Assembly: GCF_006345805.1 (NCBI RefSeq)
Contig: NC_042999.1
Coordinates: 97,092,001 to 97,156,000, forward strand
Reading direction: 5' to 3'
DNA length: 64,000 nt
Source: Octopus sinensis
Lineage: Eukaryota
The notes beneath the pieces are model-generated. The model was not told the DNA's origin and made no database searches. It worked only from the letters and a program-made list of their open reading frames with translations. Position 1 is the stretch's first letter. Every line of letters begins with the position of its first letter. The translations under genes and the position numbers were made by a program. Below are positions 28,085 to 62,846 of the stretch, in pieces.

Positions 28085-28085
28085 G
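27700..28085. repeat. Compound (GA)/(TAGA)/(CAGG)/(CAGA) microsatellite
   Basis: Directly visible. Similar blocks occur at 30140-30330 and 36430-36710. Confidence 0.95.
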
Positions 28086-36434: not shown

Positions 36435-36580
<146 letters not shown>

Positions 36581-36620
36581 TGCAGAGATGCAGACAGACA
36601 GACAAATAGATAGATAGAGC

Positions 36621-36712
<92 letters not shown>

Positions 36713-38874: not shown

Positions 38875-39434
38875 TTTTCTTCTCTAGGCACAAGGCCCTA
38901 AATTTTGGATGAGGGGGCCAGTCGACTAGATCAACTCCAGTACGCAACTGGTACTTAATCTATCGGCTCCGAAAGGATGAAAGGCAAAGTCGATCTCGGT
39001 AGAATTTGAACTCAAAACGTAAAGAAAGACGAAATACCTATTTCTTTACTACCCACAAGGGGCTAAACACAGAGGGGACAAACAAGGACAGACAAACGTA
39101 TTAAGTCGATTACATCGACCCCAGTGCGTAACTGGTACTTATTTAATCGACCCCGAAAGGATGAAAGGCAAAGTCGACATCGGCGGAATTTGAACTCAAA
39201 ACGTAGCGGCAGACGAAATACCTATTTCTTTATCACCCACAAGGGGCTGAACACAGAGAGGACAAACAAGGACAGACAAACGGATTAAGTCGATTATATC
39301 GACCCCAGTGCGTAACTGGTACTTATGTAATCGACCCCAAAAGGATGAAAGGCACAGTCGACCTCGGCGGAATTTGAACTCAGAACGTAGCGACAGACGA
39401 GATACTGCTAAGCATTTCGCCCGGTGTGCTAACG
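38875..39434 (-). mobile_element. Family A SINE with three tandem internal units
   Basis: AAAGGATGAAAGGCA(A/C)AGTCGA...GAATTTGAACTCA(A/G)AACGTA occurs three times at a ~190-bp period, with one head at 39434 and one tail at 38875. Confidence 0.9.
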
Positions 39435-39999
39435 TTTCTGCCAGCTCGCCACCTTGTTCTATACTGTAGATGCTTACATAGTCACTAGAAATATAGGCTT
39501 TATTAAATCGATAAATCGGATTTGCTAGGCAACTAAGTTAGTTAATGGATTCTTGATAGGCAAAATAACGTATTTTCCTTAACTGCTCGACATTTCACCG
39601 TCACTGAGATATCTAATACACTAGATGTATACAAGCAAACGTGCTTTTCTCAATTTCTCTGTGGACAGAAAAATACAGATTAGCATCACCATTTTCGATA
39701 TTAGTTGGTAGTCATTTCAGTAGTATAAGCAAGCATACATGCATATTATTGCATTCATTTTTTTATTAATTGATATTGATAGTATATGCTGTTTTCAGTC
39801 TTTGGACTGCGGCTATGCTCTTGAGTCAGGTACTTGTCTTATTTATTTTTATTTATCCAAACATTAAAGGATGAAACAGTAATGCAATATAAAAGCAACA
39901 ACTTTTGTGTAAACATGAATAAACACACATATTCATACGCATATTCACACGCACACACACACACACATACACACACTGACACAAGTAAAAACATACATA

Positions 40000-41039: not shown

Positions 41040-44000
41040 GTTAAGCTTTTGGGTCTATGTCATCGTATAACTGCCTCCCATAAAAATTGCCAATCTTGAA
41101 CCAAAATATGAAACAAAATTATTACTACTCGGAAAGACGAGTGGACAATGAAAAAGACTATTGACACTAAGAAAGACTTGTGGAGGCTGTGGACTTACAA
41201 TCCTCGCCTTTGTAACATGTAACAGATACCATGATTGGCTGAGAGGAGGGAGTCGAGAATCAATCAAACCCAGTTAACACTGAAATGACCTTGGACACGA
41301 ATACGGCTATTCATTCGAACAGCGAAAGTAGTGCAAACAACTTTGGATGCAATCTGTGCTGTAGGACCTTTGCAACCGAGAAAGGCACCAAGGAAAGACT
41401 TGTATGAAGAGGACAGAGCAGTAAATCATCCCCGGACTCAAACCACTGCGGATTGATAAATGCTACAGCAAATACCTCTTCCCGACAAGAAACTGCAAGT
41501 TATGAAACTGGTGCATCAGATAGTACTCGGAAGAAACCGAGGGTTCTGTGGCCTGCTGCTAATGAGAAAGGAAAATATAAAGAGTTTGAAAACAAGTTAT
41601 GTCGATCTCTTTATAACATGACAGACTCTACAGCGGAGAAACTGGGAAAGTTAACAAGCTCAATATACGATACAGGAAAGGAGTTATTTGGCGTGAAAGA
41701 TAGTATCCGATTAGCGAAAGGAAAGTATGGATCAAGCGGGAGGATCAGGAAAATGAAACAGTTGAGGAAGGAAAAGCCCAGCCTAAGAAAGTGATGGAAA
41801 AGTGCTGCAGAAGACAAAAAACCTGGCCTCGCGCTGCTGTACAACAATTTGAAAAGGAAATGCCGTTATGTGCAACGACATATCCGCCGATATGAATGAC
41901 GAAAGGAAAGTAAAAGGACTCGAGGTCATTTTCTGAAGGATCTGTATGGAGTTACTAAGAAGCTGCTCACTGAACCGAAGAGTGGCACTTTATCGTGCAC
42001 GAAAGAAGAATTGGACGCTCATATGAAAGAAACCTGCAGCGACCTGCATCGTAACCAGCCACTGCCACCTCTAAATGGGCTAAAGCATCTCTTGGAACCT
42101 GATATCGAATTTCAAATTGGGGACATCAGGGAGAAAGATGTGAATGAATTCGTGAGAAAAGCTAGAGCAAAGAGTGCCCCGGGAGGTGATGGCGTCTCGT
42201 ATAAAGTATACACATATTACAATCGTCTGCGAAAGAAGCTCTTTGTTCTATTCCGACAGCTGTGGCGCGAAGAGACTCTTGTAGAGGATTGGTGTAAGGC
42301 AGAAGACATATACCTGCCGAAGGAGGCCAATGCAGAGACTATGAAACAGTTTAGGCCGATATCCTTATTGAATGTGGAAGGCAAGATCTTTATAGGAATT
42401 CTCTCGAGAACAGTGACATATTTACAGAGTAATGAATATGTTGAATCTGTTCCAAAGGCCGGAATCCTTGGAATCCCTGGATGCGTTGAACACTGTTTTT
42501 CGATTTGGAAAGAGATCCAGTATGCCAAACAGAACGAGAGAAGTCTGGACGTGGTATGGCTTGACCTAGCTAATGTTAATGGCTCAGTGCCACACGAATT
42601 ACTGATGAGAGCCATGGACCACTTCCACATTCCAGAATAAGTAACTAAAATAATGAGGATATATTATGACAGTTTCGAGATAGGTTTGCAGCTGGAGATT
42701 TTACAACAGATTGGCACCGATTGGAGATTGGCAATGCTGCTGGCTGTACAATATCTGTCACGTGGTTTATCATAGTTGTGGAGATGATTTTGAAAGCCGT
42801 GGATTTTTCGGAACAAATCGCCCATGGACAATCGCCTAAGAAAGCCTTCATGGATGACGTGACACTTCTATCAACAGACAAGTAAATCATGCGGAGTGCC
42901 CTCTTGGGACTAGACGAACTTGTGAGGTGATCAAGGATGTGGTTTAGAGCAAAAAAGTCGCGTAGTCTGACACTTGTTAAGGGAGTGCAGAAAGAAGTTA
43001 AGTTTCGAATAGCTGAAGAAAGCATTCAAACGTCAAAGAATAACCCGTCAAGTTTGGGGCAAGCATATACTGCAACATTATCTGATAGGAATGAAAATTA
43101 TAAAACAAGCTGAGGTTCGATTATCAGCGATTGACAACTCAAAGTTATCAGGTAAATATAATATTTGGTGCTTACAGTACGGCTTGTATCCGAGACTTTC
43201 GTGGCCACTTTTAATATACAAGGTAGCATTGTCACGAGTTGAAATCATTGAACAAAAATGTAAAGTTTCCATTAGAAAGTGGCTAGGCCTACCTCGGATA
43301 TTGAGTGGTTCAGCTCTTTAGGTTAAAGAGGCTCGTTGCAGTTACCACTGGCGTCAATAGTCGAAATATATAAACTGGGGAAGGTACGAACAGTGATGAT
43401 GCAGAGAGTCAAAATGGAAATCAGGCGCAATCCACGAGATGTGAAAACAGCTAAGAATTGGAAAGCAGAAGCAGAGACTGATGACATCCTGTCTTCTCGT
43501 ACACACCAAGATATGGTGGGTGCAACGCAAATTCATCGGAAGGGACTTTGTTTTGGCGCAGATCAATTCCGACCGTTTGAAAGTATGATGCGGAGCAAAC
43601 GCAGATCTTTTGTTAGCAACAGTGTCAAAATGAGGGAAGCAGAGAGAGGAGAGTTTCATTTAATCCAATGCATTCAACAAGGACAGATGACAAGATGGGA
43701 GAAATATGTTGTTGAGAGGAAAATAAGTTGGGATGAGATATAGAGGTGGACCACATCTCGGCTAAGTTTTCTGATTCGTTCATGCTATAATAATTTGCCA
43801 TCACCTGCAAATCTAGTAAGATGGAATGTCTCAGAGAATGATATATGCAAATGCTGAAAGATCGGAACACTGAAACATATTCTTTCCAACTGTTCACTAG
43901 CATTGAACAGGTATACAGGGAGACACAACCTGGTCCTTAAGGTTATCTTCAATTCTATGAAGAACCAAATTTATCTCAACAACTGAAAAAAGAACCGTTG

Positions 44001-45065: not shown

Positions 45066-47944
45066 TACGTGTTTATACGTATGTATGAGAGAAACAGAAA
45101 ATGGAATTCATAAGAATATTCATCACAACGATCGTTTCGACCCTTCTTGCAGGTGGGATACTATACAACTGGTTGTGGTGCAATGGTGGCTACAACTTAC
45201 GAGTATCACCAGGAAAATAAAATAGAACGCTAATTTAATTTTTGAATAGCTTCATGAATAATTGTCCAACAAAGGAATTCAATTTAATCGCAATATTTTG
45301 TAAACTCTCCTTGAGCTAATATCGCAGCTTTCACTTGATTAGGCATAGTTTTGATAAAATTATGGGTGACAGATTGATCCTACTTTTCATTCAATGCTTC
45401 TTTTAGTTCTATAATTAATGTAATTGATATAGATTTTTGACGAACTTACTTGTAATCACCTATCAAGATATTCCTATGTATGTTGCATTGAATTAAGATC
45501 GAAGATTTCAGAAATTTGATTCCGTGGATTCTTGCTTGTTTAGCATGAGTTGCGTCTTATATTGATCTTTTCATCAATTCTTATATTAGGACAGATCGAT
45601 AAGATACCTTTTTTCAATATTTAAGAGCATTTTAATCCATGTAAATGATTTTCAATAAAAATTAGCTCCAATCTGTGTGTCGCTCAGACTGACTCCCCTT
45701 TCCATACAAAACTTCAACGTCTCCATTTTGAGCAGTTCCTTGCAAACAATCTGATTCATGCTTCATATATATTTTCATATATTTTTACCTTGATTTGGAA
45801 AATTGTCAGAATATACTTTCAGGAGACCATATTAATGATGACCAAATTTCGTCTAATATAACCCTTTAACCTAATCGACTCAACTGGTTTTATATGCTAT
45901 TGAAATTTTTGGCTTCTTTCTTGCATTTTTTCGTTCATACCAACGTGTGATGTTCTTACGCAATATGGTAACATGCCCATAGAATTTACAACCTCTCTAA
46001 CAATTCCAGGTCAATGTGTAATACCGTTCCCTTTAACTGCCCTCTTTGTCCTCTTAACAACTTTCTGTGCCTCACTCCCAAATTCACTCAGCAATTTCCA
46101 TCTTCAATCAAGCTCTTCACTATATTATCCAGTGTTTCATATGAATACTGAAACTCAGATATTCCTTGACTTGGTTTGTCACATTGATACCAGCCGATGA
46201 CTTACCCGTGTGTAAATTGATCGATATCTTTTTCCCAATTGTTTTCATAGTTGTAAATCCAAAAACAATTAAGCTCATGTATGTACCTACAAAAAAGGGA
46301 AATATATCTAATTAGAGAAAGAAAACGAAAAATCAATGGTTGAATTGTGTTCGTCCATGCGCGCGTATGAGTGTATGGTTTAAAATTTTCCATAGGTCAC
46401 TTTATGTGTGTGTTTGTGTGTGCACGCGTGCGTGTACAGATTTGTTTGTATGCAGATACACATTAACATGTATATATGTGTATCTTTCTTTGAGGGCAGT
46501 TTTCTGTGTGTTTTGTTATTCTGCTTACCAATTATCAATATAGGGTGAAGTGAGGTAATTGACACAAACACAAGATGTTGATATTTATATAACATCATCA
46601 GTTTCCAGTGTCAAAATTATTTTTCTTAGTAGAATGTCGTTATACGTTTATCACTGTCATGCATGCACTATGTATGCCTGCGCAAGTGCATGTGTTTATG
46701 TATGAATGTATGTATGCATGTATATGTGTATGTATTAGGAAAGCATCTGGGTAGATGTATGTGTGTGTGTGTGTATTATGTATGTGCTTAATTGTACATA
46801 TGTATGCATTTATATATTTATGTGTCATTTAACGGTAACTGATATCATGTATAAAAAATGAGGATAAGAGTCGCCGGAACTGGAATTACCCATAAGACAA
46901 AATGACATTTCGTTAATATAGAGAACATATTCCAGTATATTATTACATATATTCTTTATTAAGCTATTATTATGCTATACATACACAAATATGCATTTAT
47001 ATATATTATAGTATGGCAGTCGCTATGTGGTAGCAGCGTGTGGTGGAGTGTGAAGCAGGAAACGTTTTTAAAATCAACAAATTCGTTAACTCCGTTCACT
47101 CGACTTTACTCAAACAAACGTTAATAGGACGAGAGACGTCATCTTTCTGTTGCTTTAATTCACTGAAACATCCTGTACATCATCACCTCTTCTGCCATCG
47201 TGACTTTCACTATCTTTACTGTCGCTATTGCTACCATCTCTATCATGCGCATCAACCCCATCGTGAGGAAAAGGCTAAAAAAAGGGAAAATTCTTAGGTG
47301 TTCGACTAAGTTCACTTTCGAATATCATCGGTTTCCAACGGACTTTGGATTTTACCCTGAAGAAGGGAAAAGTTGAGGGAGAGATTATTATGATGAGAAG
47401 AGAGAGATTGGGGGTGCGGGGTGTGATTTCAAGTTCATGGTATATGAAGAGGCTAATAGTTTATGTAAGTATAGCAAATGAGAAGGGGTGTTGTAATCTG
47501 AGAGACTGATGTTGATTTTAGCGGAACAGATAGGAGAGATTATGGTGCAAGACAAGGAATGACGGCATGGCGGCGGACGTACTGTATTTACATTTTGTGT
47601 TTAGTGAACGAGCTGACTAGGTGCAGATTCGTGGGTGTTCAGTGTAGTTGATCAATAGCCAAATGGCAAGGTGTAATATAACGGTTGTGTGTCTCTATGT
47701 TTGTGTACATGCGTACTTTTATTTGCTGTATACGTGTATTTGAGTATCTGTGTGTTGTGTGTATGTTCATGTGTGTTTGTACGTGTGCTCATGTGTCTTT
47801 ATGTGTGCATGGATTTTGTAAATGCGTGTGCTTGTGTATGTGTGTATGTATCTGCGTTTTGAGCTTCTGTGTGCGTGTGTGAAGGAATTTATGTATTTGT
47901 GCGCGCGTGTGTGTATGTGTGTGTATGTGCGTGCGTGTATGTGT

Positions 47945-47984
<40 letters not shown>

Positions 47985-50285
47985 CTGTCTCTGAATATTT
48001 GTATATATGCCTATGTATCTTTGAATGTGTGTCTGTCTGCCATTTTGTACCAGGTCTCTCCGTCATTATGGATGCGTGTCTGTCTGTCTATCTGTTGTTA
48101 TGTATATGAGTTTGTCTCTTATTATGTATATGTGTCTAATTGTAAATGCTTCTCTGTGTGTATGTCTGTATGCGTGTGTACCTGTGCACTCGGAGTTCTT
48201 GCAATGGGAAGGTAAAGACCCAGAAGGAAGGATCAAGAATCTGTCAACATCGTGAGATACAGACAAATGATGTTTCTGTAGCGGGGGGGGGGGAGTGGTG
48301 TAAGTATAAGTTGTATATTTGCATGTATATCTTGGTGTATGTGTAATAGAGAGTGTATATTACATATATATACGTACGTGTGTGTGAGTGTGAACACAAC
48401 GTACTTGAAAGGATGGAAAGACAATTAAGGATTAAGTTTATTTAAACATCTACCTTCACCAATATCAACATCAACCGCTGTTGCACCCTCAGGCACCCAT
48501 CAACCCTTCGACAAATCAATAACCATAAGAAAATGGTGTATTTGATGACCCTGTGGCCCTTCTTTCTATCACATTCCCTAGCCTACCGTTTCACTGAACT
48601 CAAGTTCAAATACTTCGTCCTTTGTGACCCGCTGGAGGTCAGACACACCTAGTATTGATTTTCCTTGTTTTCTTTGCCTCATTCTTTTTATTTGAGAATC
48701 TTTGTGTGTAGAGGAGATAGAGTAACGTGTGCTTCTCTCTGTCTCTCCTGTCTCTGTTGTCCGTTTTCCGAAGAGTTCTTTGATTAGTTTCTCCACGCAC
48801 ATACACACACACACACACACCTGCTTTCATTTGATATTCTTTCTCTCTATCTTTCTTCCTCTCCCTCTGTCTTTCTTTCTCTCTCTCACTCCCTCTCATA
48901 CATACACACACACACACAAACACACACACATGCATACAACTTTCAGTACATAGTACGTTGAAGTTGCTTTCCATTCTCTCTGTCCATGCCAGCAGATGTA
49001 CGGGCGTTGAACGTGATCAACTGAAATACTCGGGCACTTGGCCAAGTTATTTTACAAACCTAATGCTATCTTTACCACTTCCTAGTCAACAGATTTTACC
49101 GATGACAGAAACCGGAATTTGAAATTTGAATGCAGGCAGCCAAAACCGGTACAGCGTGACATCACATCCAATTCTGCTATATTTTGTCAATCCACCGCCC
49201 AAGCACTCCATTTATTATATTGTCACTTTATCGACTACGAAAGGACGAAAGACAATATTAACTTAGGCAGAATATCAACCCAGAGTGCATGAACAAATAC
49301 CGAAAGGTATTCAGTCCGACGCTCTTACAATTCTGATATTTCTACATCCATAATAAATTAGGCATATATATTCTTTTGGGCTATCTGGAAGCTCTGCCAT
49401 TGTGCTTGCTTTGGAACGGGCTGGTGCTCATGTTTTATTAGCATCAAAGATTTCAAGATATTTTGGCTTTAGATGATGACACACGTACTAATGTTGAAGT
49501 ATCTGTAGGTGACATCATCATTTTTGAAATTCGCTTTATCGGTGGCAAATTGGCAGAGTTCTTTGGGCTGTGCAATCAAAAGTTAATTTTTTTATTAAAT
49601 GCTTACTCATTTAATGTTCAACATCTGTTTCCACCATTCTAAAGGACTTATAATAATTAACCCACTGTGCACATTGAAAGAAAAGGTTTGTCAATCCTGC
49701 TTGACAAAATTACTCGATGCGCATGCTTAGTTGCAGTCGTTGAATTATCGCAACAAATCGTTATAAGTGGTGGAAACAGAAATTAAACATCAAATCAATA
49801 ATTATCATTTGTTGGAGTAGAGATGCCAATTTGAGGCTTTTGAATATTTTAGATGGTTGCAAATTGATTCTGATGTATGTTGAAAATTACACGGATGACT
49901 GACGATGGCGAATGTTTTTATTTTTCTGCTTGGTATACCCAGAACGCAACAAGCGTTAATAAGTAACGGCGGTTAATCGGACATGTAATAGATGATACTC
50001 TTCAACACCGGCTTTCCCAAACCGCTTTGAATGAGAGAGAATGTGAGTGAACAAATGAGAACGAAACTAAATAAAGTTTTCCTCGTAAAATTAGGCGCTA
50101 TTCAGAAAGCTAAACGGGCCATCATCACACACACGCACGCACACACAGATTTATATCTATATATAAAAATAGCAATTTCTGTTTGACTGTCTGTCCGTCT
50201 GCCTGTTAAAATGTTCGTATTTCATGTCTACATAAGAATCATCATCATTTATTTATTTATCTATTTATTTATTTATTTATTTCAG

Positions 50286-50470
50286 GTCATACAATGCTGT
50301 GAAACCCGTGGACAGTTAAATATCCAACTACGTCGATTCCAAAACAAACGGGGTCTGACATTTAAAGGTCACTGCTGTGATGACCAGGTTTCGTGGCCAC
50401 CTCTAAATAGGCATAATTGCACTGAGTCGTGTGACTACGTGCTACGGCTACTGATTTCAGGCCTTGGTCG
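50286..50470 (+). CDS. Internal coding exon of a Notch-ligand-like (DSL family, Delta/Serrate-like) gene; end of signal peptide plus first half of the N-terminal C2/MNNL domain
   Basis: Acceptor tttatttcAG at 50284-85, donor GTAAGT at 50471. 185 nt, phase 0 to phase 2. Encodes VIQCCETRGQLNIQLRRFQNKRGLTFKGHCCDDQVSWPPLNRHNCTESCDYVLRLLISGLG, matching the remembered DSL N-terminal pattern G-x-F/L-x-L-x-L-x-x-F-x-N-x-x-G...G-x-CC...C...C. Confidence 0.85.
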
Positions 50471-52374
50471 GTAAGTGTACATTTCCATTTCGAAATAGTT
50501 AAAGGAAAAGTCCACCGAAGGGAAGAAAGATAACAACCCGATAGCAGTGCCATTTGCCATATTATTTTAACATGGGCTGGACTGTTACACACACTGGAAG
50601 GGGTGAGGGCGATTGGGCGCAGCTATTTGAATGCTGACCATTTGGCACGGTGATCTCACATTCAGCCTGCTTTTTTTGTTGTTGTTTTTTTGGGGGGGGA
50701 GGGCTTTGCGACAATACCCTTTAAGGTTGAAGGAGCACGCGCAGACATATATACAATAATAGATCGAAAGAGTGTGAGAGAAAGGAGAGAATGACATTAC
50801 AATTTATTAATTGAACATGGTTGACATAGATAGTTTTCCTCTCCTCGTACTCATAAAGAGCAATATGCTTACATACATAAACAGGCAGAGGTGGGGAGAA
50901 AACAACTGAAGCATTAAAATGTCTGGTGTCAAATAAGTCAGCGTCGAATCAGCGACGCCAAAACGGCTGTTGTACAACGTGTCATACCCATACCCTGCAC
51001 AAACACCAGACGTTGGACACATCATGCAATCAAACCAAGAAACAAGACAGTTGGGCTGAACATTCCGAAACTTAGCCGGTACCAATTCCCCTTGATAGTT
51101 TAATAAACTGAGGCCATGTAGCATAAGGAATCGTTTCCAGAAACTCAACGAAACACCTAGCAGCAGACTTAAACATATAAACTATGTACAATTTGTCCAA
51201 AATCTAATGTACTCGAATATCTCACCTACGTACCAGAAACTCCTTCAGTCAGGCAAGCAAATTTGTATGTAGGAAACTATAGAGAACTGCCGTACTAAAT
51301 GAGTGCTATGCTGTTTTTGTTTGTTTATTTGGAACAATATAATATAGACAGAAGGCCTGAAATTTGGTAGGATACTTTCAGTCTCAGTACGTAACTGGTA
51401 TTTTATTTTTCGATCCCGAAATGATGAAAACAAAGTTAATCTCAGTGCGATTTGAACTTAGAACGTAAAGAGCTGAAACAAGTACTGCAAGACCCCTTCT
51501 GACGCTCCAATGAATTTGCCAGCTCTCCGCCTTTTTTGAAGCGGGGACAGCACAATGCTATCGGGCACTTTCTTTCGGATGTGATGCTCGTATCCACTCC
51601 CACTCCCCGTAGGTGTACGTCATTCGGCAGCTGCCATTCCTAAACATCAGGCCTGGTAACCACATTCAGTCTTCAGTCAACTATATCGACCCCAATACTC
51701 GTCTGATAATTATACGGATCGACATTACTTCCTTACGTAAACAGTTATGAAAAAAGAGAAAAATCAACATAAATATCTACGCTATTCTTAAAGAAAAAAC
51801 TATGCGGGATTTGTTTAGTTCTTGTTTCCTTATAAATACTGTGACTAGGTAGAATAATGAGAACGCAGAGGGTCGAAAAGTCAAAGTACCAAGCAACTAA
51901 CTGAAATATCTACCGTGTGTACTTTGCCACCGACGCTGTGTTATCTCTGTGACTAAGACACAGTCCAACTTACTTTCAATAACTATATCAAATAGTGTAT
52001 AATATTCCCTGCTGTGTGCAACCTGCAGTATTAAAAACAATTCTGGATGCTTCATTAACTTGTAGTGCTAATTTCAATCCCTACTGTAGGTCTGAAGTTG
52101 ACAATGGAGTGATATAATTCAAGTGTATTTCTCTATTGAATCTATACATAATGAAAGTATAGTTACTGATCTAACCAACGTCTACCTGGAAAAGTACCAA
52201 ATAATGCACTGAAGTGTAATCAACTGATTCTTGATTTTATCTGCTTTTGGTATTTATTTGTCGACTTTTTTTAGAATTGAAGCATAAAATCTCCCCCTTA
52301 CAATGCAAGATTTAACCTAAAGACAATGACTAACAAAAACACTCAGAGAGCACAAAACCTCCGCCAGTGTTTCT

Positions 52375-52700: not shown

Positions 52701-54454
52701 GACTTACGTCTAACATGACAAAAAACAACTCAAACCGCTTGTGACACAACCCTCCGCCGAGGCAACAGCAACGGCCTCGCAACGATTAGCTGGAGATGGT
52801 TTTTAAAATAAGAATATCTGAAATAAACTCGACTGCTCTCAGAAACGAGAATATTAAAAATAAACTCGACCGCTCTCAAAAATTAAGTTTTAAAAAGTGG
52901 GGAAATAATCCAGAATCCTTGTAAGGCGGCGAGCTTGCAATGCACTTAGTTTGGTTCCATTTTACTGTATCGATGTTACATATATAAAAGGTGATGAAGA
53001 AAAAACAAAAACATTTACTAGCACTATCATAATACCACGTGAAAACACCTGTGGTAATTCTTCACAAGCTTCTACAAACTCAGTTAATGTGCGTGTTTGC
53101 GTTTGTGTGCGTGTCTGTGTGTTTGGGGATCATGTATGCAAGGTGTAGTTAAAGAAATAAAGATGGAAAAAAAATTATTGAGAAAAAGGGAAATACACAG
53201 AAGTATAAATAAAGATTTCCGGAAAATACTCGCTAGCATATTTTGAAAGGACACACTTGTTAATCTATAAGGGAAAAAAGAAAAAGCTACAAAAATGCAA
53301 AAACAAATTAAAGCCATCCCGACAGCTGATTAGCAAGTACTTTCATTTGTAATTTTAAGATTAAAAATGATGACGCTTTTCACAGGAAAGTGTAAAGTCG
53401 ACCAAACAGAACGTGTCTCAGGGTTATGATTATAGTTAAGATTAGAATAGGCCTTTATTCTAACAACACTGATTTTAGAAAATTTGGGACAAGGTTAATA
53501 TCACAACATTCTTAACAAAATACAAAAGGAATTTTGTGATATTTATCTCTGTGTTTGTTTTTTCTGAGACATTAGTAACGCAAGTGAATTGAATATATTT
53601 AAATTTTGGCTACAGAATGGGTACAGTTGAAAGTCAGCATGTACAAAGTGTAGGATCAAGTCCTGAAACCGGTATTATGTTATATCAAGCTAATACGAAT
53701 AACTGGCAACGCAGTACTTCATTAAGCTGAAAGTTACGATTTACTAAGAGGAATAGTTGTTCAGTGTTTTATTAGCTTGTAGGGATGAATGTGTTTCTTC
53801 CAGTAGGCCTAAGACCATGGTGGAAACACTTACAACACGACCATACATTCAATTATATCGACACCAATTCAAAGTGGGTTCGAAAACAAATTATTGCTTT
53901 TACCCCAGTGAGAATAGGGACTAGTGTTATGAAACTTTTGACTGATCAAATGATTCGACATTATGGAGTGGTGTGTGGGGGGGTGAGAGAGAGAGAGAAG
54001 TGATTGGCTATTTCAACTGAGTGCGTAGATAATGTCAGTCTTCCTGAACACTGTTGTGCGAGGTTTTGAATAAAATGATAAAAATTAACCACAGTAGCTC
54101 CCCCGCTAATGTGCATTAGTGATTTTAATTAGAAACAATATTTATTTTTGGAGAAAAGCGGCATTATCGTTCTGGATAAGAACAGTCATCACTGACAAAA
54201 TTTGGACTCAGAAGATAGTGCTACGGCTGTAACATTTGACAGCGATTCTGTGACCCCAGTTGCATATAATCAGATGAACAATGACCAGCATCGTGAAAGT
54301 AGCCATGTCCTGAATATAGATGTAATTTCCCGTGGGAAACATTTAATTCTACTTAAATTGCTTAGGTACGAACATTACATACTTACTATCTCCTCCTATA
54401 TGCGTGAAATCCCCGAAAAAAAAAACAGAAACAAAACGTGTGTAATTGAGTATT

Positions 54455-54817
54455 CTTTTCTACTCTAGGCCTGAAAGTTTTGGGGGAGGGGAGCCAATCG
54501 ATTAGATCGATCCAGTACACAACTGGTACTTAATTTACCGACCTTGGAGGGATAAAAGGCAAAGTTGATCTCGGTGGAATTTGAACGTAAAAACAGACGA
54601 AATACCTATTTCTTTACTCCTCACAGGGGGCTAAACACAGAGAGGAAAAACAAGGACAGATAAACGTATTAAGTCGATTATATCGACCCCAGTGCGTAAC
54701 TGATACTTAATTTATCGACCCCGGAAGGATGAAAGGCAAAGTCGACCTCGGCAGAATTTGAACTCAGAAAATAGACAGACGAAATACGTGCTAACGTTTC
54801 TGCCAGCTTGCCGCCTT
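54455..54817 (-). mobile_element. Family A SINE, two-unit form with 17-bp TSD
   Basis: TSD GTGTGTAATTGAGTATT at 54438-54454 and 54818-54834. Confidence 0.9.
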
Positions 54818-55293
54818 GTGTGTAATTGAGTATTGAATTACTGGTTAGGTTTGTTATATTCTATTATCCTGAAGATCTTTTATTATATTGCAAAAGTGGG
54901 GAATGTATATTCTTGGTGTTCCAATCTTCAATAAAAGAATCAAGTTCTCTTATACTTATTTGCAACTTTTTTTTATTACCTCTGCCTTCTCGAAGGTGGA
55001 GGTATTGTTTTCAGTCGCGTTTGTTTGTTTTCAAGTACCGCTGGAAGTATTCGGATGAAACTTTCAGGGATGTTTGGCCTTGTGACTGGCACAAACTGAT
55101 TAGATTTTGGGATTCGGTACCAGACAAGGATTCTGGATTCTTTTCTACTCTAGGCACAAGGCCCGAAATTTGGGGGGAGGAGGCCAGTCGATTAGATTGA
55201 TCCCAATACGCAACTGGTAATTAATTTATCGACACCGAAAGGAGGAAAGGCAAAGTCAACCTCAGCGGAATTTGAACTCAGAACGTAAAGACA

Positions 55294-56224
55294 TAGTTTG
55301 TTTTCTTTCTCAATTAAGACTACGTCCGGCTTTCTATTCTCAATCTCATGGTCGCACTGAATCATAAAATCCCATAGGATCTTTGCATTTCTATTTTCGA
55401 CAATGCCTTCAGGTTTGTGGTCGTACCAATTTTTTACTCTGTCAAGTCCATACTTGTTGCAAAGTGTCCAATGGACAAGCCTGGCTATATTGTCGTGGCG
55501 TCTCTTATATTCCTTCTGGGCTAGTGGCGTACATTGGCTGGTAATATACCATACGGTTTCACCGTTTTTTCCACAGATTCTGCACTTATCACTTTCTGCT
55601 GTGTTGTCTATTCTGTATTTTATGTAGTTTGTTCTTAGTGCTTGTTCTTGGGCAGCACAGATTAGGGCCTCCGTTTCCGGTTTTAAATCACTTTTAGTCA
55701 TCCACAGCCATCTTTTTTCTCTGTCTGTGTTATCTTCAGCATCCCTATGAAATTGCCCATGTATTCTTTTCTTTATCCACCTATTTTCAGTTTCATTCGT
55801 TTTCAATTTCTTGTATAGTGCTTTATCTTTGCATTCTTTTATCCTACACAAGCCTGACCTTCTTACTTCTAATTATAGTGGTTCTATGGCATTTCTTACA
55901 TACCATGCAATGTTGTTTTCTTCTGCTCTAATGCTGTGTTCACATCCAATAAGTCCTCTTTCCCGCCTTTTTCTTGGTACATAGTCTGTCTGTGTCACTT
56001 TTGGGGTGGAGTGACCCATATCTAATTAACATCTTCCCTGTCTTACTGTCTAAGCTGTTTAGTGTGTCTACTGTCCATATGATTACTGCAGCTCCATATA
56101 TAAAGAGTGGAACCACCCAGGTGTTGATAGCTTCGATCTTATTCCTTCCGTTTAATTTCCACTTACGGATCAGTCTCAGTCAGCGTAAGTACTCCACCTT
56201 AAGTTTTTCTGTCATTTCTTTCTC
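55294..56224 (-). mobile_element. Second copy of the R4/Dong family seen at 12082-13436, 3' end replaced by a family A SINE piece (55140-55290)
   Basis: ORF 55192-55851 reads PETEALICAAQEQALRTNYIK..CRICGKNGETVWYITSQC..RHDNIARLVHW..ILWDFMIQCDHEIENRKPDVVLIEK, then runs into SINE sequence. Confidence 0.9.
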
Positions 56225-56401: not shown

Positions 56402-56425
56402 TTATTTATTTATTTTTTTTTATTA

Positions 56426-56632
56426 AAGGCGGCGAGCTGGCAGAATCGTTAGCACGCCGGATGAAATGTTTAGCGGTATTTCGCTTGTCGCTATGTTCTG
56501 AGTTCAAATACCGCCGAGGTCGACTTTGCCTTTCATCTTTTCGGGGGTCGATAAATTAAGTACCATTGAAACACTGGGGTCGATGTAATCAACACATCAC
56601 ATCCCCCAAATTTCAGGCCTATAGTAGAAACG
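56426..56632 (+). mobile_element. Family A SINE monomer
   Basis: AAAGGCGGCGAGCTGGCAGAATCGTTAGCACGCCGG head after (TAT)n 56338-56405; short ATT tail. Confidence 0.9.
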
Positions 56633-56649: not shown

Positions 56650-57155
56650 TATTATTCAGTAGTGTTATTTTTATCTGTGTGCCTTGGGTATGTACTGTGG
56701 TTTGTTGTGATGCTCTTATTTTTACTATATTGAAAGTGTTTTAAGTAAGATGTGTGCACTGTCTAGTAGTGCTATTTTCTGTATGTTGTATATACTTGTT
56801 AGTTCTGATGTTTTTGTTATGTATTTGTCTGAACATTTTTTTTATCATACCTAATGCGCCTACTATGATAGGAATTGTTTCTGCTTTTAGACTCCACATT
56901 CGAGTTACCTCTATTTCCAGGTCATTGTATTTTGAAAGTTTCTCCATTTCTTTTAGAGAAACGTTGTCATCTGTTGGTATTGATACATCAATTAGAAAGC
57001 ATTTTTTCTTCGTGATCTCTGACAATTATATTTGGCCTATTGGCCTTAATTTCTCTATCTGTGTGTATTGGCATATCCCATAGTATCGTTGCTTTCTCAT
57101 TTTCCGTGATCTTTTCTGGCGTGTGCCTATGCCAACTTTTTCTGTTGCTATTCCA
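56650..57155 (-). mobile_element. 3' fragment of a different R4/Dong-clade family (RLE domain)
   Basis: HTPEKITENEKATILWDMPIHTDREIKANRPNIIV / CFLIDVSIPTDDNVSLKEMEKLSKYNDLEIEVTRMW..IPIIVGALGMIKK. Confidence 0.85.
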
Positions 57156-57599
57156 TGCAAAAGCAATTACGGCTGTAACAGCAACAAAAGTAGTGAAATC
57201 AACAGCTACAAAAACACCGTCCTCGAGAACCCTCACAGTGCTAACAGCAGCAGCAACTGGAAGCCCCCAAATAACAACAGCAAAACAAAAAGGGAATGAC
57301 CGCACCCCGCTACCACAAGACCCTCCCTGCTTACACCAATAAATAGCACACAAACACACATAAAAATAGCATCGAAATCGCACAAAACTTATACAACGCC
57401 ATAAAAAGCAAATACCCAGACGAAGTAGGAAACTTCAGGGGGATATCAATAAAAGACTAAGGAAACAGTTGCATGTGGAAACACCCATAGGCAACCGGAG
57501 GGTTGAAACTCCTGTCCTTCCATAGAAATAAGATAAATTGGTCGTAAGTTGATTCTTTCTAACTTTCCTCTTTCCTATCGTACATTGTCGTACTCAGAA

Positions 57600-58210: not shown

Positions 58211-58353
58211 ATTTCTTGTTTGACATTTTTGCTTCTTTTTTAGTTATTTTATTTTTTACGGTTTCATGTAACCCCACATTGTATTGAATACTATAGTATC
58301 GTCCTCTCCTCCTTGATCTTTTTACAATTTCTAGGTGATTAATAAAGAAACCA

Positions 58354-58408
<55 letters not shown>

Positions 58409-58459
58409 CATTATTATTATTATTATTAATGTATTTTTGTTGTTTGTTTTTCACCCCAG

Positions 58460-58568
58460 AGCCAACGATCACGTGTTCAGATTTCATCAACCGGTCAAAT
58501 ATAACTCTAACAGTATTGATTTCGAAGGCTCTTATCCTCAAATGTCAGTTCCGTTTGACCACTGGCCG
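58460..58568 (+). CDS. Next coding exon of the DSL-like gene (C2/MNNL domain, ends in WP)
   Basis: Acceptor ttttcaccccAG at 58458-59, donor GTAAGT at 58569. 109 nt; first base completes the CG|A Arg codon from the previous exon. Encodes (R)ANDHVFRFHQPVKYNSNSIDFEGSYPQMSVPFDHWP. The phase-0 intron after WP matches the recalled FTWP|GTF / FAWP|RSY intron of vertebrate DLL1/JAG1. Confidence 0.85.
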
Positions 58569-59088
58569 GTAAGTGACATAACATAAAAATTATCACTTAT
58601 ATGACATCCGCTTTGTGAAATAAAAGTCTTAACATTGTCAAAATCCTTTATCATAGATTTAATAAGTTCTCACGACTTCAAAGATTTATTCATCATACAA
58701 AACAACTAGGCAATCCGTCCTTCATCCACTCATTTCACATTTTTTCAGTTTGCTGTTACCTACACCACGCATTTCAGGTGACAAGATACCCACCATCAAT
58801 CCTTGCAACTAGTTGTTTAAAAACTCTATAGACTCAGCTCTGTCACTACATCACTGATAACGATATGTGTGTGTGTGTGTGTGTGTGGTGTGTGTGTGTG
58901 TGTGTGTGTGGTGTGTGTGTGTGTGTGTTTATGTAAATTTTTTTCAGCAGTAATATTTTATGTAGTCGTAAGTTATGGACGGTCAGAAAGCTACTACTGG
59001 TTTTATGTCTGTTATTGTTCTTTATAGACGTGAAATCAATGTTAATTTTCTGACCGGCCACAACTTTTGACTACATTACACACACACA

Positions 59089-59148
<60 letters not shown>

Positions 59149-59796
59149 ACACACATAAAGTCATAAATAACAGTGAAATAGTTTGATAAAATTATATTCA
59201 AATTTCACAAATTGTTTCGTAACTTAAAAACATGTAAATAAGTTATGCTATTATATTTAATAATTCAAGGCCTTATGCCTAGAGTGAAAATAATTATTAT
59301 ATTTAATAATAAATAAATTACTTACATGAACGCACTGATGCCAAATGCAAAAACCCTTTCAAAATAACGCAGAATTTAAGCTACGTCCTCAGGTGAAAGT
59401 CATCCTTAATCTTTTCAATTTTGACTTTGCTTTACGTCGAGAATTTAGTATTTAACAAAGACGTTTTTTCACCAGTGGGCGTAACTTAAATTCTGTATTA
59501 TTTTGAAAGACTTCTTACTTTTGGCATTAATGCAGACATGTAATTTATTTATTATCAAATATAATTATATAAATCATTTACACATTTGTCGTGATATTTT
59601 AATTTTCTTATTGCTAAATAAAATTTCATCAAACTATTTCTCTGCCATTTATGATTTTATATTCTCATTATAGTTCCGTCTTGTATTATACTATATATTC
59701 TATGTTTTGTAGAATGATACGTTAAGGAGCTTTTTTATGAGTACTTCCGGACTATTTAAATTTATATATTGTGACTTTACATATATATATATATAT

Positions 59797-59854
<58 letters not shown>

Positions 59855-59857
<3 letters not shown>

Positions 59858-60354
59858 AGGGAATACTCAGCACAGAAGTATCAAACAGTTCAATTTTCAT
59901 GAATTGAGAATTATATGTGAAAAATCATTTATTGAATGCAATGTTTTAAATATATATCTATGTCAATGACATGTTACATTTTCTAGGTGAATAAAATCAT
60001 TATACTCATCAAAGATGCCGGTAAATAGATACTTGTAAGGAGAAATTTTGTAGTAATCTGTTACTCGTGTGCTTTAAAGAAATATATGTATATGTGTATG
60101 TACGTATGTATGTATGTATGCATGTATGTATGTATGTATGTATGTATGTATGTATGTATGTATGTATGTATGTATGTATGTATGTGCGTGTGTGTATGTG
60201 TGTGTATGTGTATGTGTGTGTGCGCGTATGTATAAGTAGCTCCAATTCATCTTGCTTGGTAAAGTAGTCGAAGCTCTGGTCCATTACAAACTTCACTGAA
60301 TTTAACGTGATTTAACATGAATTAAACAACATACATACATACATATATACTTAT

Positions 60355-60412
<58 letters not shown>

Positions 60413-60930
60413 AAAAAAGAAGTTTGAAAACGCCACTATATTGGATAAATTTTAATTTTCTTATGAATTTTACATGTTTCGGTTCTTGTTTGCTTTTATA
60501 CTCAGTTATAATAAAAAACAATTTTACATTAATCTGATAGGTTACTCTATAATTTTGTAGATTACAAATTTATCATTTGTAAAGAAGACTGTTGTTGATA
60601 ACGACTTCGAAGTTTCGGCAAGCTAAGCCATCGTTATATTCTTATACAAGAATGTTGTTGAGAGTGCCTTGGATGTTTCAGCCATCTAAACCATCGCCGG
60701 GTTGCCCAACGATGGCTTAGCTTGCCGAAACTTCGAAGTCGTTATCAACAACAGTCTTCTTTACAAATGATAAATTTGTAATCTACAAAATTATAGAGTA
60801 ACCTATCAGATTAATGTAAAATTGTTTTTTATTATAACTGAGTATAAAAGCAAACAAGAACCGAAACATGTAAAATTCATAAGAAAATTAAAATTTATCC
60901 AATATAGTGGCGTTTTCAAACTTCTTTTTT

Positions 60931-61003
<73 letters not shown>

Positions 61004-61506
61004 AGTATATATGTATGTATGTATGTTGTTTAATTCATGTTAAATCACGTTAAATTCAGTGAAGTTTGTAATGGACCAGAGCTTCGACTACTTTACCAAG
61101 CAAGATGAATTGGAGCTACTTATACATACGCGCACACACACATGCACACACATACACATACACACACATACACACACGCACATACATACATACATACATA
61201 CATACATACATACATACATACATACATACATACATACATGCATACATACATACATACGTACATACACATATACATATATTTCTTTAAAGCACACGAGTAA
61301 CAGATTACTACAAAATTTCTCCTTACAAGTATCTATTTACCGGCATCTTTGATGAGTATAATGATTTTATTCACCTAGAAAATGTAACATGTCATTGACA
61401 TAGATATATATTTAAAACATTGCATTCAATAAATGATTTTTCACATATAATTCTCAATTCATGAAAATTGAACTGTTTGATACTTCTGTGCTGAGTATTC
61501 CCTTAC
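59855..61506. mobile_element. 1.65-kb fold-back (palindromic) element: arms 59855-60635 and 60708-61506, 72-bp spacer
   Basis: Arms are reverse complements (GTAAGGGAATACTCAGCACAGAAG.../...CTTCTGTGCTGAGTATTCCCTTAC). The differences I saw are in internal microsatellite lengths. The left end abuts (TA)n 59781-59854; the right end is followed by ATATA. Confidence 0.95.
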
Positions 61507-62575
61507 ATATAAAGATTTAAACAAAATGTTTTCCCTCTATTTTTCCCTTTTAAGAGAGTCCAAAAGGATTTTATCGGTGCATAGCATACACTGTATGCAA
61601 ACCATCGAATGTGCATCTACTTGGTCATTTCAGCTGCTAGAAATAGCAGCCAAATCACATACATATATATACATATATGTATACTATATTCATATCTATG
61701 TATACATGCATGTATGGATGGATATGTGTGTATGTATGTATGTATGTATGTATGTATGTATGTATGTATGCGTAAAGCCAAGTTCCTTTATTTATTGTCT
61801 TTTTTGTCACATTTTAGAAATATTGAATGAGAAAGCAGTAGCTGTGCAGAGAAAGGTGAAAGGGACATAAAACATATTATGTATAGAGATGAATTAGCTA
61901 CATACACACACACACACACAAAACACACATACATGCATACATACATACACACATACATACACATAATAAAAAAGAGACTAAGAGAGAGTGAGGAATGGAA
62001 AAAATTGTTGACAATTAGCAGATTGATAGGCTTTCCGGTAACAGTTAACAGGCTGACAGGCTTTCCGGTAAACAGAGAGTGAAATATAGGGGAATGGAAA
62101 ACAGTGTAAAGAAAGATTTGGCGCAAGTAAATAATAAAAAGAGGAGAGAAAAAAGGAGACAGACTCTGCTATAGAACATGTGAAAATTAGTGACGTGTCG
62201 TGATAAAATAACAGAAGAATAGAGACTGAATAAATGTCAGAGAGAGAGAGAGATATGGAAACTCGTGAACGTGTAAGACGTTGGGAAATGGAGAGAATAG
62301 ACGTAGATTTTGAATAAGAAAAGCAGTGGAAATCGCATATGGTGAAAGCAGCGATGGTAGATCTTCATTTAACTTATGCTAACGTTTAAATCTATGAAAA
62401 AGGGTGCAACCATTTTAACTACAAGCTTGAAACATGATTCATCGTTCACACATATGGATGAACGCGTATGTATGTACAGACATTCTAATTCGCGCTCTAT
62501 CACTCTTTATATGTGTATGTATATATTACATGCTTGAGTTGTATAGTTATGTACGTGTGTGTGGGGGGGAGGTGC

Positions 62576-62607
<32 letters not shown>

Positions 62608-62685
62608 TCTAACCAACTCATTCTTTCTCTAAGTTTTTTTTAAATATGAACAAATAATAATAGTAATTTCCATCGAATCTGACAG

Positions 62686-62846
62686 GGAGAAGTTGAGCTA
62701 CACGTGTTTTTCTACGACTACCACGATATTGATAAATCAGCTCAGCTTGTTGACTGGTTCGAAACACGACTGGTCCAGAAAAAGATGCCATCACATGACA
62801 ACCTTTATAAAAAGCTTCGTGGAAGAAGGAAACTGTTCAAAACGAG
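62686..62846 (+). CDS. Next coding exon of the DSL-like gene (C-terminal part of C2/MNNL domain)
   Basis: Acceptor ctgacAG at 62684-85, donor GTAAGT at 62847. 161 nt, phase 0 to phase 2, no stops. Encodes GEVELHVFFYDYHDIDKSAQLVDWFETRLVQKKMPSHDNLYKKLRGRRKLFKT, continuing WP|G as expected. Absent from the ORF track because it has no upstream ATG. Confidence 0.8.

Follow-up and report, generated by a model that had tools for sequence, protein, structure and literature searches.

A young, near-perfect intronic palindrome beside a (TA)n tract in Octopus sinensis: template-switch duplication or foldback transposon?

Introduction

How a long, almost perfect palindrome came to lie within an intron of an Octopus sinensis gene, and whether its transcript matters to the gene, are the questions raised by the locus described here. 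Hyper-editing of long intronic inverted repeats is a general metazoan pattern, intramolecular duplexes within one pre-mRNA form the class that holds most metazoan hyper-editing, and the octopus has been reported to be unusually rich in hyper-edited long-dsRNA loci (PMC5625713). Several processes are known to create such repeats. Template switching yields perfect hairpins in one step (PMC5453318; PMC8794818; PMC10710096), leading-to-lagging strand switches take place at short inverted repeats (PMC11790251) and human fold-back inverted duplications carry single-copy spacers (PMC3907307). Among transposons, Ginger2 elements are characterized by TGTNR termini, a 4-bp target-site duplication (TSD) and an RTATAY target, and are reported from animals including a sea snail, with short non-autonomous derivatives (PMC2836005).

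In this study, the palindrome, its flanks and its host gene were analyzed within a 64-kb stretch of DNA, referred to below as the window, and the possible origins of the repeat were compared.

Results

Structure of the palindrome

Self-comparison of the sequence delimits an inverted repeat of 1,662 bp, consisting of a left arm (59850–60635, 786 nt), a single-copy spacer (60636–60707, 72 nt), which is the predicted hairpin loop, and a right arm (60708–61511, 804 nt), whose sequence, three length differences in microsatellites aside, is the left arm's exact reverse complement. The earlier note had described a near-perfect 1.65-kb palindrome with arms of ~780–800 bp and a 72-bp spacer; these dimensions are borne out, and the ends that it gave (59855 and 61506) were off by no more than 5 nt each. 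No substitution separates the arms across 782 aligned positions, and the differences between them are three indels of 4, 10 and 12 nt, every one in microsatellite. The left arm has one extra ATGT unit (60122–60125), and the right arm has 10 extra nucleotides at 61144–61153 (GCACACACAT on the + strand, ATGTGTGTGC in left-arm orientation) as well as 12 extra nucleotides of (AC)n(AT)n at 60963–60974. Among minus-strand self-matches across the window, the arm pair ranks first (2619 bits, against 301 bits for the next), and the match is beyond the reach of chance. Microsatellites account for about one quarter of each arm; in the left arm they comprise (ATGT)n with related repeats (~60085–60235) and (AC)n(AT)n(GT)n (~60355–60412).

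The final 59 nt of the left arm (U1, 60575–60633, + strand), which are mirrored at 60710–60768 in the right arm, have a direct copy within the spacer (U2, 60638–60696, + strand), 75% identical and with a period of 63 nt. The duplication that produced U1 and U2 is far older than that of the arms. Since U1 and U2 have diverged by 25% while the arms are identical, the arm duplication is recent under any model. The recent age proposed in the earlier note is thus in keeping with the absence of substitutions over 782 bp, which indicates arms that are young or recently homogenized.

Searches for related sequences

No further copy of the arms was found in the 64-kb window using blastn with word sizes of 7 and 11, and terminal-motif searches allowing mismatches detected no solo terminus there. 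The non-microsatellite segments of the arms are unique to the two arms within the window. Apart from low-complexity (microsatellite) matches, no alignment within the window spans an arm boundary, so that no known repeat crosses it. A 19/21-nt match between 58322–58342 and 59974–59994 does not extend, has a score within the null range and was attributed to chance. Scans of metagenomes and prokaryote genomes, collections that are not expected to contain this genome, gave no matches to arm motifs. Ten open reading frames (ORFs) of the window were absent from the collection used for exact look-up, where those of the ten that were submitted as DNA and have GTG or TTG starts may have been read with V or L in place of M, and a search with a 90-aa exon peptide gave no candidates.

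The palindrome itself has no coding capacity, and the only transposon-type coding sequences seen in the window are reverse-transcriptase fragments. The best relative of a retroelement ORF in the window is 69% identical and lies on an ENA contig. The ORF at 33267–33659 was considered as a mariner-type transposase and was set aside, as it had no PDB match and only weak HTH matches in Pfam. A scan of the window for tRNA and tmRNA genes found none, and hence no tRNA-derived SINE signature. A 26-nt motif that may come from an octopus SINE, and that is a lead on the taxon only, occurs exactly at 32860–32885; a full-text search found no paper containing this motif.

Host gene and intron

The palindrome lies in an intron of 4,117 nt (58569–62685, + strand, phase 0, GT...AG) between an upstream exon (58460–58568, + strand), which ends with …ANDHVFRFHQPVKYNSNSIDFEGSYPQMSVPFDHWP, and a downstream exon (62686–62846, + strand), which begins with GEVELHVFFYDYHDIDKSAQLVDWFETRL…. 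The 5' splice site lies 1,281 nt and the 3' splice site 1,174 nt from the base of the hairpin. The flanking exons have canonical cag/.../gtaagt borders, join in frame and give an alignment to mollusc proteins that spans the junction, all of which confirm the intronic position between these two exons that had been claimed previously. The position of the intron is common to a limpet, a chiton and the window gene. In Patella the orthologous intron measures 157 nt and in the chiton ~1.05 kb, with nothing comparable to the palindrome inside either, in species that are too distant for dating it. The intron is old and the palindrome within it is young.

A preceding exon of the same gene (50286–50471, + strand) encodes the peptide segment with a match to Pfam MNNL (N terminus of Notch ligand, C2-like), which scores 33.2 bits against a cut-off of 22.5. 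The homologues are mucin-like, single-pass membrane proteins of 1,850–2,980 aa, of which the named ones come from gastropods or a chiton, and the window protein is about equally distant from all of the named homologues (44–48%). Two homologues that were inspected are mucin-like with one C-terminal transmembrane segment, and in the three that were scanned using Pfam (1,852–2,976 aa) no DSL or EGF domain was found. Because the homologues have no such domains, the host gene probably encodes a mollusc MNNL-domain, mucin-like membrane protein and not a canonical Notch ligand; the remainder of the gene lies beyond the window, and the domain assignment is that of the homologues. The earlier designation 'Notch-ligand-like' therefore holds for the N-terminal MNNL/C2-like domain and does not extend beyond it.

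Flanks and a second inverted repeat

An interrupted (TA)n tract, (TA)7 T (TA)10 T (TA)18, occupies 59782–59853 and stops exactly where the unique sequence of the left arm starts; its last 4 nt (TATA, 59850–59853) are part of the inverted repeat. Their counterpart at the outer end of the right arm (TATA, 61508–61511) is followed by AAGATT... and by no TA tract. This TATA is either a 4-bp TSD or template-switch microhomology. Inspection for a TSD found TATA at both ends, which as a palindromic motif also belongs to the inverted repeat, and no non-palindromic TSD of at least 3 nt at the flanks of the palindrome. Next to the left TATA is a terminal TGTAA (59854–59858), mirrored by TTACA (61503–61507), which fits the TGTNR...YNACA pattern of Ginger and Gypsy-type elements.

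A second near-perfect inverted repeat, IR2 (24471–24769), is unrelated to the palindrome and has arms at 24471–24570 and 24670–24769 (100 nt, 99% identity) separated by a spacer of 99 nt. Its start coincides with the 3' edge of a (TA)n tract (24438–24475), and its end is TATA(T). The palindrome and IR2 are the only two near-perfect, non-low-complexity inverted repeats with a spacer of at most 3 kb in the window. In both, the start falls exactly on the 3' edge of a (TA)n tract, the polarity is the same, and the right outer end is TATA without a tract. As (TA)n tracts make up 0.56% of the window, the chance of both repeats abutting a tract edge is ~2e-5 by a post hoc estimate. The two repeats have no sequence or termini in common, so that one transposase does not explain both, whereas one replication mechanism does. 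In the orthologous loci, (TA)n tracts with n of at least 8 number one in the chiton (114 kb) and zero in Patella (62 kb); the Patella locus contains seven near-perfect inverted repeats, none of them at TA tracts, and the comparison is uninformative on the TA association.

Predicted RNA hairpin

Folding of the + strand pre-mRNA predicts four perfect helices of 329, 30, 176 and 247 bp, amounting to a duplex of ~782 bp, with a minimum free energy of -1349.5 kcal/mol compared with -336 ± 10 kcal/mol for ten mononucleotide shuffles. The ~0.8-kb pre-mRNA hairpin that the earlier note had suggested is thus feasible on paper. The predicted fold has the structure expected of an ADAR substrate: the intramolecular dsRNA would be long and near-perfect, and would form on the sense strand of an intron that homology supports. 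An Rfam scan of 59000–62600 (E ≤ 1) gave 61 matches, all on microsatellites and all below the gathering threshold (mir-3149, for example, with 57 bits against a threshold of 100), and a known structured RNA or miRNA was accordingly rejected as an identity for the palindrome.

Discussion

Reality and age of the palindrome

An assembly or sequencing artefact, in which the single arm of the true genome was doubled in opposite orientation by a chimeric fold-back read, by a missed hairpin adapter, or by an error in polishing or gap filling, is improbable, and is less likely than either a template switch or a transposon. The absence of substitutions, with differences in microsatellite length only, does look like two error-prone readings of one template, searches turned up neither an independent read set nor a second assembly, nor an identical ORF on a public contig, and within the spacer there is a stretch of 12 nt that matches the SMRTbell adapter. 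However, 8% of the 141-nt segments in the sequence match that adapter equally well, which places the match at background level, and the spacer is in fact a copy, 75% identical, of the arm end next to it. Missed-adapter and fold-back reads produce palindromes of read length, mostly at contig ends, that seldom survive consensus. In the present case, the internal structure, a genomic-looking single-copy spacer of 72 nt, three indels between the arms, and collinear flanks with ordered, in-frame exons on both sides argue against such reads. Furthermore, the occurrence of the same (TA)n-edge architecture in IR2 points to a mutational process, although in vitro polymerase switching at (TA)n may give the same result. 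It is also distinctly unlikely that the palindrome is old and that the identity of its arms has been maintained, either through intrachromosomal gene conversion of the kind seen in sex-chromosome palindromes or through hairpin-templated repair. The divergence of U1 from U2 does attest to an old history of duplication in the region, three microsatellite length changes have had time to build up between the arms, and arms of ~0.8 kb exceed the usual minimum for efficient recombination. However, conversion would have to erase every substitution and yet spare three indels of 4–12 nt, and the usual fate of long, closely spaced, perfect inverted repeats is loss or asymmetry, not retention. The orthologous introns of Patella and the chiton, too distant to give an age, also offer nothing comparable.

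Template switch or transposon

The origin is divided between two ordinary mechanisms, template switching and transposon insertion, which are comparably likely. The account tentatively preferred here, at somewhat less than even confidence, is that the palindrome is a real and evolutionarily young local inverted duplication, produced in an old intron by a template switch and most likely neutral. A nascent strand with a ...TATATA end would, in the course of replication or break-induced repair, leave the (TA)n tract at 59782–59853, which is prone to slippage and hairpin formation, and would re-anneal by its self-complementary TATA(TA) to a TATA ~0.88 kb downstream on the opposite template (now 61508–61511). 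Backward copying of this template for ~0.8 kb would produce the present left arm, after which the strand would go back to the original template at the point of departure, right after the (TA)n tract; the 72 nt left uncopied between the arms would become the spacer. The left arm would then be new, whereas everything from the spacer through the right arm to the right flank would be ancestral. An event of this kind may be classed as FoSTeS/MMBIR/ODIRA or as a 'four-point' template switch at the large end of the size range. The locus shares with four-point switches, FoSTeS/MMBIR, ODIRA and fold-back duplications a copy beside its source, a short spacer, perfect arms, short microhomology and a hard-to-replicate tract at the breakpoint. 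An adjacent inverted copy with identical arms (786/804 nt, 0 substitutions) and a single-copy spacer (72 nt) is what was observed, and microhomology at the switch point is present in the palindrome and likewise in IR2: for the first switch it is 4–6 nt of TATA(TA) in both if the left arm is new, and 0 if the right arm is new. However, the return switch has at most 1 nt of microhomology, and a 0.8-kb copy after a 0.88-kb jump is large for a fork-local event; documented short template-switch events span tens of base pairs, whereas the palindrome is a clean 0.8-kb duplication within an intron. The association with TA tracts consists of two cases in 64 kb that were noticed post hoc, and the ancestral state is inferred, not seen. 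In addition, the termini with their flanks, A/TATA/TGTAAGGG...CCCTTACA/TATA/A, match the hallmarks of Ginger2 (PMC2836005), and a template switch makes this resemblance a coincidence of roughly 1.5–7%.

These termini also speak for the alternative, a possible origin held with similar reserve, in which a non-autonomous DNA transposon of foldback type, bearing Ginger2-like hallmarks, recently inserted into a TATA target where the (TA)n tract ends. The element, 1,654 bp in length (59854–61507), would be foreign to the intron and the two TATAs would be its TSD. TGTAA and TTACA fit the TGTNR...YNACA pattern, an exact 4-bp TATA direct repeat stands at the flanks, the 5' side of the target (A/TATA) fits RTATAY, and YNACA ahead of a non-tract TATA is rare, occurring at 1.5% of such sites in the window. 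The tract itself is a dense array of RTATAY targets, and identical arms with no coding capacity are found in MITE-like elements. The AT-rich target and the report of the superfamily in a mollusc are further points of likeness to Ginger2 (TDD-type) elements (PMC2836005). However, published Ginger2 terminal inverted repeats (TIRs) measure 50–180 bp, compared with arms of ~790 bp that make up the whole element here, and the 3' target base is A and not Y. As TATA is its own reverse complement, the evidence for a TSD is ambiguous by construction. Foldback elements that consist almost wholly of near-identical arms, 0.2–1.6 kb in length, that form hairpins and lie at TA-microsatellite targets are known in plants as MuTAnT, Micron and TAFT (PMC4486113). 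MuTAnT-type insertions nevertheless have a 9-bp TSD and TA repeats on both sides, neither of which the palindrome has; its right flank (TATA/AAGATT) allows only a 4-nt duplication and its tract is on the left only, so that a MuTAnT-type MULE foldback was rejected. Long-TIR foldback families also exist in animals (Drosophila Foldback, Galileo and Tetris) and resemble the palindrome in their long arms, but foldback-type arms usually consist of tandem subrepeats and occur as families; of the palindrome, the 64-kb window contains no second copy, fragment or solo terminus. Both inverted repeats lie at the very last TATA of their tract, which has a likelihood of ~6–12% and 12–25%, respectively, if any TATA is eligible. 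Moreover, IR2 has the same flank pattern but termini that begin CGACG..., not TGTNR, and two unrelated families would be needed. The description of the palindrome in the earlier note as a recent insertion is thus sound as to recency, whereas insertion is one of two comparably likely origins and template-switch duplication fits at least as well.

Fate of the transcript

For any animal hairpin of this kind, ADAR editing and siRNA production may reasonably be expected. The RNA would be subject to promiscuous deamination by ADAR and possibly to dicing, and would then be discarded with the intron, as across animals. The coleoid framing of the earlier note adds little, since the hyper-editing pattern is general to metazoans (PMC5625713). 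The consequences for the RNA hairpin are the same if the palindrome is a transposon. Known intronic ADAR-edited inverted repeats, such as inverted Alu pairs and the palindromic Harbinger repeat of Xenopus, likewise place a long near-perfect duplex in one pre-mRNA; they are derived from dispersed repeat pairs or palindromic families, whereas the palindrome is single-copy in the window and its duplex is a predicted one.

That the palindrome is instead a selected regulatory element, be it a nascent hpRNA (endo-siRNA) locus, an ADAR 'sponge' or a platform for editing, with the host gene or a sequence elsewhere as its target, is very improbable. Drosophila hpRNA loci do look alike, being long inverted repeats with near-perfect arms that are born de novo and turn over rapidly (PMC10317233). 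The predicted hairpin is also extremely stable, and the arms contain long alternating purine–pyrimidine tracts that would pair with each other. However, Drosophila hpRNAs are separate transcription units with arms derived from their target genes and with Dcr-2-dependent siRNAs, whereas this palindrome is intronic and its arms have no homology to exons or other sequence within the 64-kb window. The microsatellite content of the arms also speaks against such a role, conservation offers no support and the palindrome is of too recent an origin for selection to be deduced. There is no sign of a selected function, and the palindrome is most likely selectively neutral.

Implications

As a mutation the palindrome is recent and of an ordinary kind, and it belongs to a class, long intronic inverted repeats, that is already known as the main ADAR substrate across animals. 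As a single locus it carries little weight, being one young structural mutation of an intron with signs of function absent. If it is polymorphic, it would provide a natural test case in which the same pre-mRNA occurs with and without 782 bp of perfect dsRNA, and would allow editing, dicing, intron retention and expression of the host gene to be compared in a mollusc.

Of greater interest as a lead is the architecture common to the palindrome and IR2, with a (TA)n tract on one side and a TATA end. If this pattern is genome-wide, it would reflect either a specific replication-error route to new hairpins or foldback transposons in molluscs that target TA tracts, of a kind that the literature consulted documents so far from plants only (PMC4486113). 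The broader proposal, which is speculative and on present evidence unlikely, is that template switches primed by (TA)n tracts recur in this genome and each create a long, perfect hairpin in a single step, the palindrome and IR2 being two fresh products. If such recurrent priming is true, new small-RNA or editing-dependent regulation would find its raw material in newly formed intronic hairpins, and the process would help to build the unusually large load of long dsRNA, the substrate of ADAR hyper-editing, that has been reported for the octopus.

Structure and age of the intronic palindrome

The intronic palindrome (IR1) consists of a left arm of 786 nt (59850-60635), a spacer of 72 nt (60636-60707) and a right arm of 804 nt (60708-61511), and the earlier note, which had given arms of 780-800 bp and a 72-bp spacer, was accurate in both position and size. 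IR1 is by far the top reverse-strand self-match of the window (2619 bits versus 301 for the runner-up). No substitutions were found over 782 aligned arm positions, and the arms differ only by three length changes, each within a microsatellite: an extra ATGT unit in the left arm (60122-60125) and surpluses of 10 nt (61144-61153) and 12 nt [(AC)n(AT)n, 60963-60974] in the right arm. U1, the closing 59 nt of the left arm (60575-60633), recurs as a direct copy, 75% identical and with a period of 63 nt, that makes up most of the spacer (U2, 60638-60696); the spacer is genomic in character.

The U1/U2 duplication is far older than the duplication of the arms. With no differences over these positions, divergence between the arms is at most ∼0.4% (95% upper bound), and the event that made the arms identical is recent, whatever its origin, with time enough elapsed for three microsatellite slippage events. 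Of the recent insertion proposed earlier, the youth is thus upheld, whereas insertion as the origin is not, since a template switch fits comparably.

An Rfam scan of IR1 gave no family above threshold, a tRNA scan was negative and no ORFs were found in it beyond translated microsatellite. An miRNA identity was considered and rejected, the sub-threshold Rfam matches all lying on microsatellites. A SMRTbell adapter in the spacer was likewise discarded: the match to what we take to be the adapter sequence is 12 nt long and at background level. Neither further copies of the non-microsatellite segments of IR1 nor a solo terminus occur elsewhere in the window.

Host gene and intron

Three exons of the host gene (50286-50471, 58460-58568 and 62686-62846, + strand), all placed by tblastn of homologous proteins, have canonical splice borders and are joined in frame. 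IR1 lies within the 4,117 nt, phase 0 intron between the last two (58569-62685, + strand), confirming its intronic position. When these two exons were searched against 1.84 billion representative proteins, ten proteins were matched, each at its N-terminus and with a best E-value of 9e-16; the top seven are 1,850-2,980 aa long. The named homologues are all from molluscs (Plakobranchus, Elysia, Biomphalaria, Haliotis, Patella, Lottia and the chiton Liolophura) and are annotated as 'Notch ligand N-terminal domain-containing' or 'mucin-like'. The spliced window peptide exceeds the Pfam MNNL threshold (33.2 versus 22.5 bits). No DSL or EGF domains were found by Pfam in the three homologues scanned, and the two homologues inspected are long, low-complexity and mucin-like, with a single C-terminal transmembrane segment. 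Because the homologues are of this kind, the description of the gene as Notch-ligand-like holds only for the N-terminal C2-like domain. The host gene belongs to a family of mollusc mucin-like single-pass membrane proteins of 1,850-2,980 aa that carry the MNNL (Notch-ligand C2-like) domain at the N-terminus; its named members come from gastropods and a chiton only, and it seems to be uncharacterized.

Over the shared domain, the window protein is 44-48% identical to the full-length gastropod homologues and the chiton protein; the full-length gastropod homologues are 56-99% identical among themselves. These identities put the source of the window in a non-gastropod mollusc lineage, for which a cephalopod would be a compatible candidate. 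The same exon junction is interrupted by an intron in Patella (157 nt) and in the chiton (∼1.05 kb). The intron position is thus conserved and the intron old, with the palindrome as a lineage-specific addition. The intron also contains an older imperfect palindrome (59293-59568, ∼276 nt, 72% self-complementary) 280 nt upstream of IR1, which is AT-rich and has no adjoining (TA)n tract. Beside the polypyrimidine tract of exon 58460, 30 nt before its 3' splice site, is a long (ATT)n microsatellite of ∼25 units (58353-58430).

A second inverted repeat and other repeats

When the entire window was scanned for inverted repeats with spacers of up to 3 kb, exactly two proved near-perfect and not of low complexity: IR1 and a second, unrelated in sequence (IR2), with 100-nt arms (24471-24570 and 24670-24769) at 99% identity around a 99-nt spacer. 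The start of each coincides exactly with the 3' edge of a tract of (TA)n, which is (TA)7 T (TA)10 T (TA)18 at IR1 (59782-59853) and (TA)9 TG (TA)9 at IR2 (24438-24475). In both cases the final TATA of the tract is included in the repeat, the far end is TATA followed by non-TA sequence, and the polarity relative to the tract is identical. (TA)≥8 tracts occupy 0.56% of the window, and the chance of both repeats abutting a tract edge was estimated, post hoc, at ∼2e-5. IR2 reads A-TATA-CGACGAACCC...GGGTTCGTCG-TATA-T, its far end being TATAT, and could have arisen either as a MITE of 299 bp whose TSD is TATA or by a template switch.

A SINE-like interspersed repeat of ∼170-230 bp is abundant; its copies number at least ten, lie in both orientations and share 76-92% identity (6724-7134, 11548-11758, 13493-13650, 20491-20846, 21045-21562, 25630-25863, 38874-39455, 54451-54817, 55137-55292 and 56419-56593). 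At 21060-21495, two copies in opposite orientation make up a 67% palindrome, and such copies would also yield intramolecular dsRNA in long transcripts. The 26-nt motif GGCACCTTGGGCAAGTGTCTTCTACT, which we take to derive from a SINE of octopus, is matched without mismatch at 32860-32885 and with three mismatches at 26760-26785; it hints that the window may be of octopod origin, and a literature search found no paper containing it. Retrotransposon fragments lie at 36996-37412 (-), 41453-43743 (+), 55192-55851 (-) and 56741-57383 (-); the first of these matches Pfam RVT_1 (36996-37412, E 9e-11), and there is a weak RVT_1 match at 42011-42640. The ORF at 55192-55851 (219 aa) has hundreds of relatives in animal assemblies (best 69% identity), some with zf-RVT. 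Microsatellite density is very high across the window [for example 3199-3784, 14095-15500, 27417-28136, 36291-36802 and 47677-48212], with (TATG)n, (AC)n, (TA)n and (AGATAGAT)n-type units, the last reading as SIYLSIYL in ORFs; most ORFs of at least 90 aa stem from microsatellites.

Origin of the palindrome

The reading that we tentatively prefer is a template switch. With TATATA at its end, a nascent strand would depart from the slippery, hairpin-prone (TA)n tract, pair via its self-complementary TATA with a second TATA on the opposite template (876 nt ahead for IR1, 199 nt ahead for IR2), copy backwards and then return, so that the left arm would be the new copy. With the left arm as the new one, the first switch has 4-6 nt of microhomology in both repeats, and with the opposite polarity none. 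A switch of this kind would explain the tract on one side only, the shared polarity and the occurrence of one architecture in two unrelated sequences. Short template-switch mutations are known to create perfect hairpins (PMC5453318; PMC8794818; PMC10710096), in ODIRA, short inverted repeats are the sites of leading-to-lagging strand switches (PMC11790251) and fold-back inverted duplications have single-copy spacers (PMC3907307). However, for a fork-local switch the event would be large, microhomology is all but lacking at the return junction, and the resemblance of the termini to those of Ginger2 transposons would be a coincidence.

A transposon insertion is a possibility close in weight to the template switch. 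IR1 reads A-TATA-TGTAAGGG...CCCTTACA-TATA-A, and its termini fit the TGTNR of Ginger2 DNA transposons, which produce TSDs of 4 bp and favour RTATAY targets (PMC2836005). The fit is non-trivial because YNACA precedes just 1.5% of the non-tract TATA sites in the window. Animals with Ginger2 include a sea snail, and short non-autonomous derivatives exist (PMC2836005); in plants, TA microsatellites are known targets of foldback elements 0.2-1.6 kb in length (PMC4486113). Against this, IR1 and IR2 each used the very last TATA of the tract, which is roughly 6-12% and 12-25% likely, respectively, if any tract TATA could be a target, and MuTAnT-type insertions have TA repeats on both sides, whereas here the tract is on one side only. 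The IR2 termini (CGACG...) do not fit TGTNR, so that two transposon families would be needed; furthermore, the IR1 arms exceed the published TIRs of Ginger2 several-fold in length and no second copy of IR1 was seen in the window. As TATA is its own reverse complement, the flanks offer no independent evidence of a TSD. An assembly or sequencing artefact is less likely: arms differing in microsatellite length alone would be expected from two noisy readings of one template, but IR1 is internal with collinear, exon-bearing flanks, its spacer is genomic, its arms are not strict copies and its architecture recurs at IR2.

RNA consequences

The proposed capacity to form a hairpin is supported by folding the sense strand of the 1,760-nt IR1 region, for which the predicted MFE is -1349.5 kcal/mol versus -336 ± 10 for ten mononucleotide shuffles. 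The predicted fold has four uninterrupted helices (329, 30, 176 and 247 bp) with three indel bulges between them and a 72-nt loop; the distances from its base to the splice sites are 1,281 nt (5') and 1,174 nt (3'). Because both arms are in one intron, the hairpin would be expected to loop out sequence rather than to promote back-splicing.

In all Metazoa examined, most hyper-editing sits in long, near-perfect intramolecular dsRNA of inverted repeats; octopus is reported to be exceptionally dense in such loci, and the species covered also included Aplysia (PMC5625713). By analogy, editing of IR1 RNA could reasonably be expected in a mollusc of any class, and would for the same reason be undistinctive. 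Dicing of the hairpin into endo-siRNAs may be possible; however, known hpRNA loci derive from their own targets (PMC10317233), whereas the IR1 arms have no match elsewhere in the window. No sign of a selected function was found for IR1. It is a young intronic element with the capacity to fold into a hairpin, and a fresh instance of an already known kind; the one feature deserving genome-wide attention is the one-sided (TA)n-TATA architecture common to two unrelated inverted repeats.
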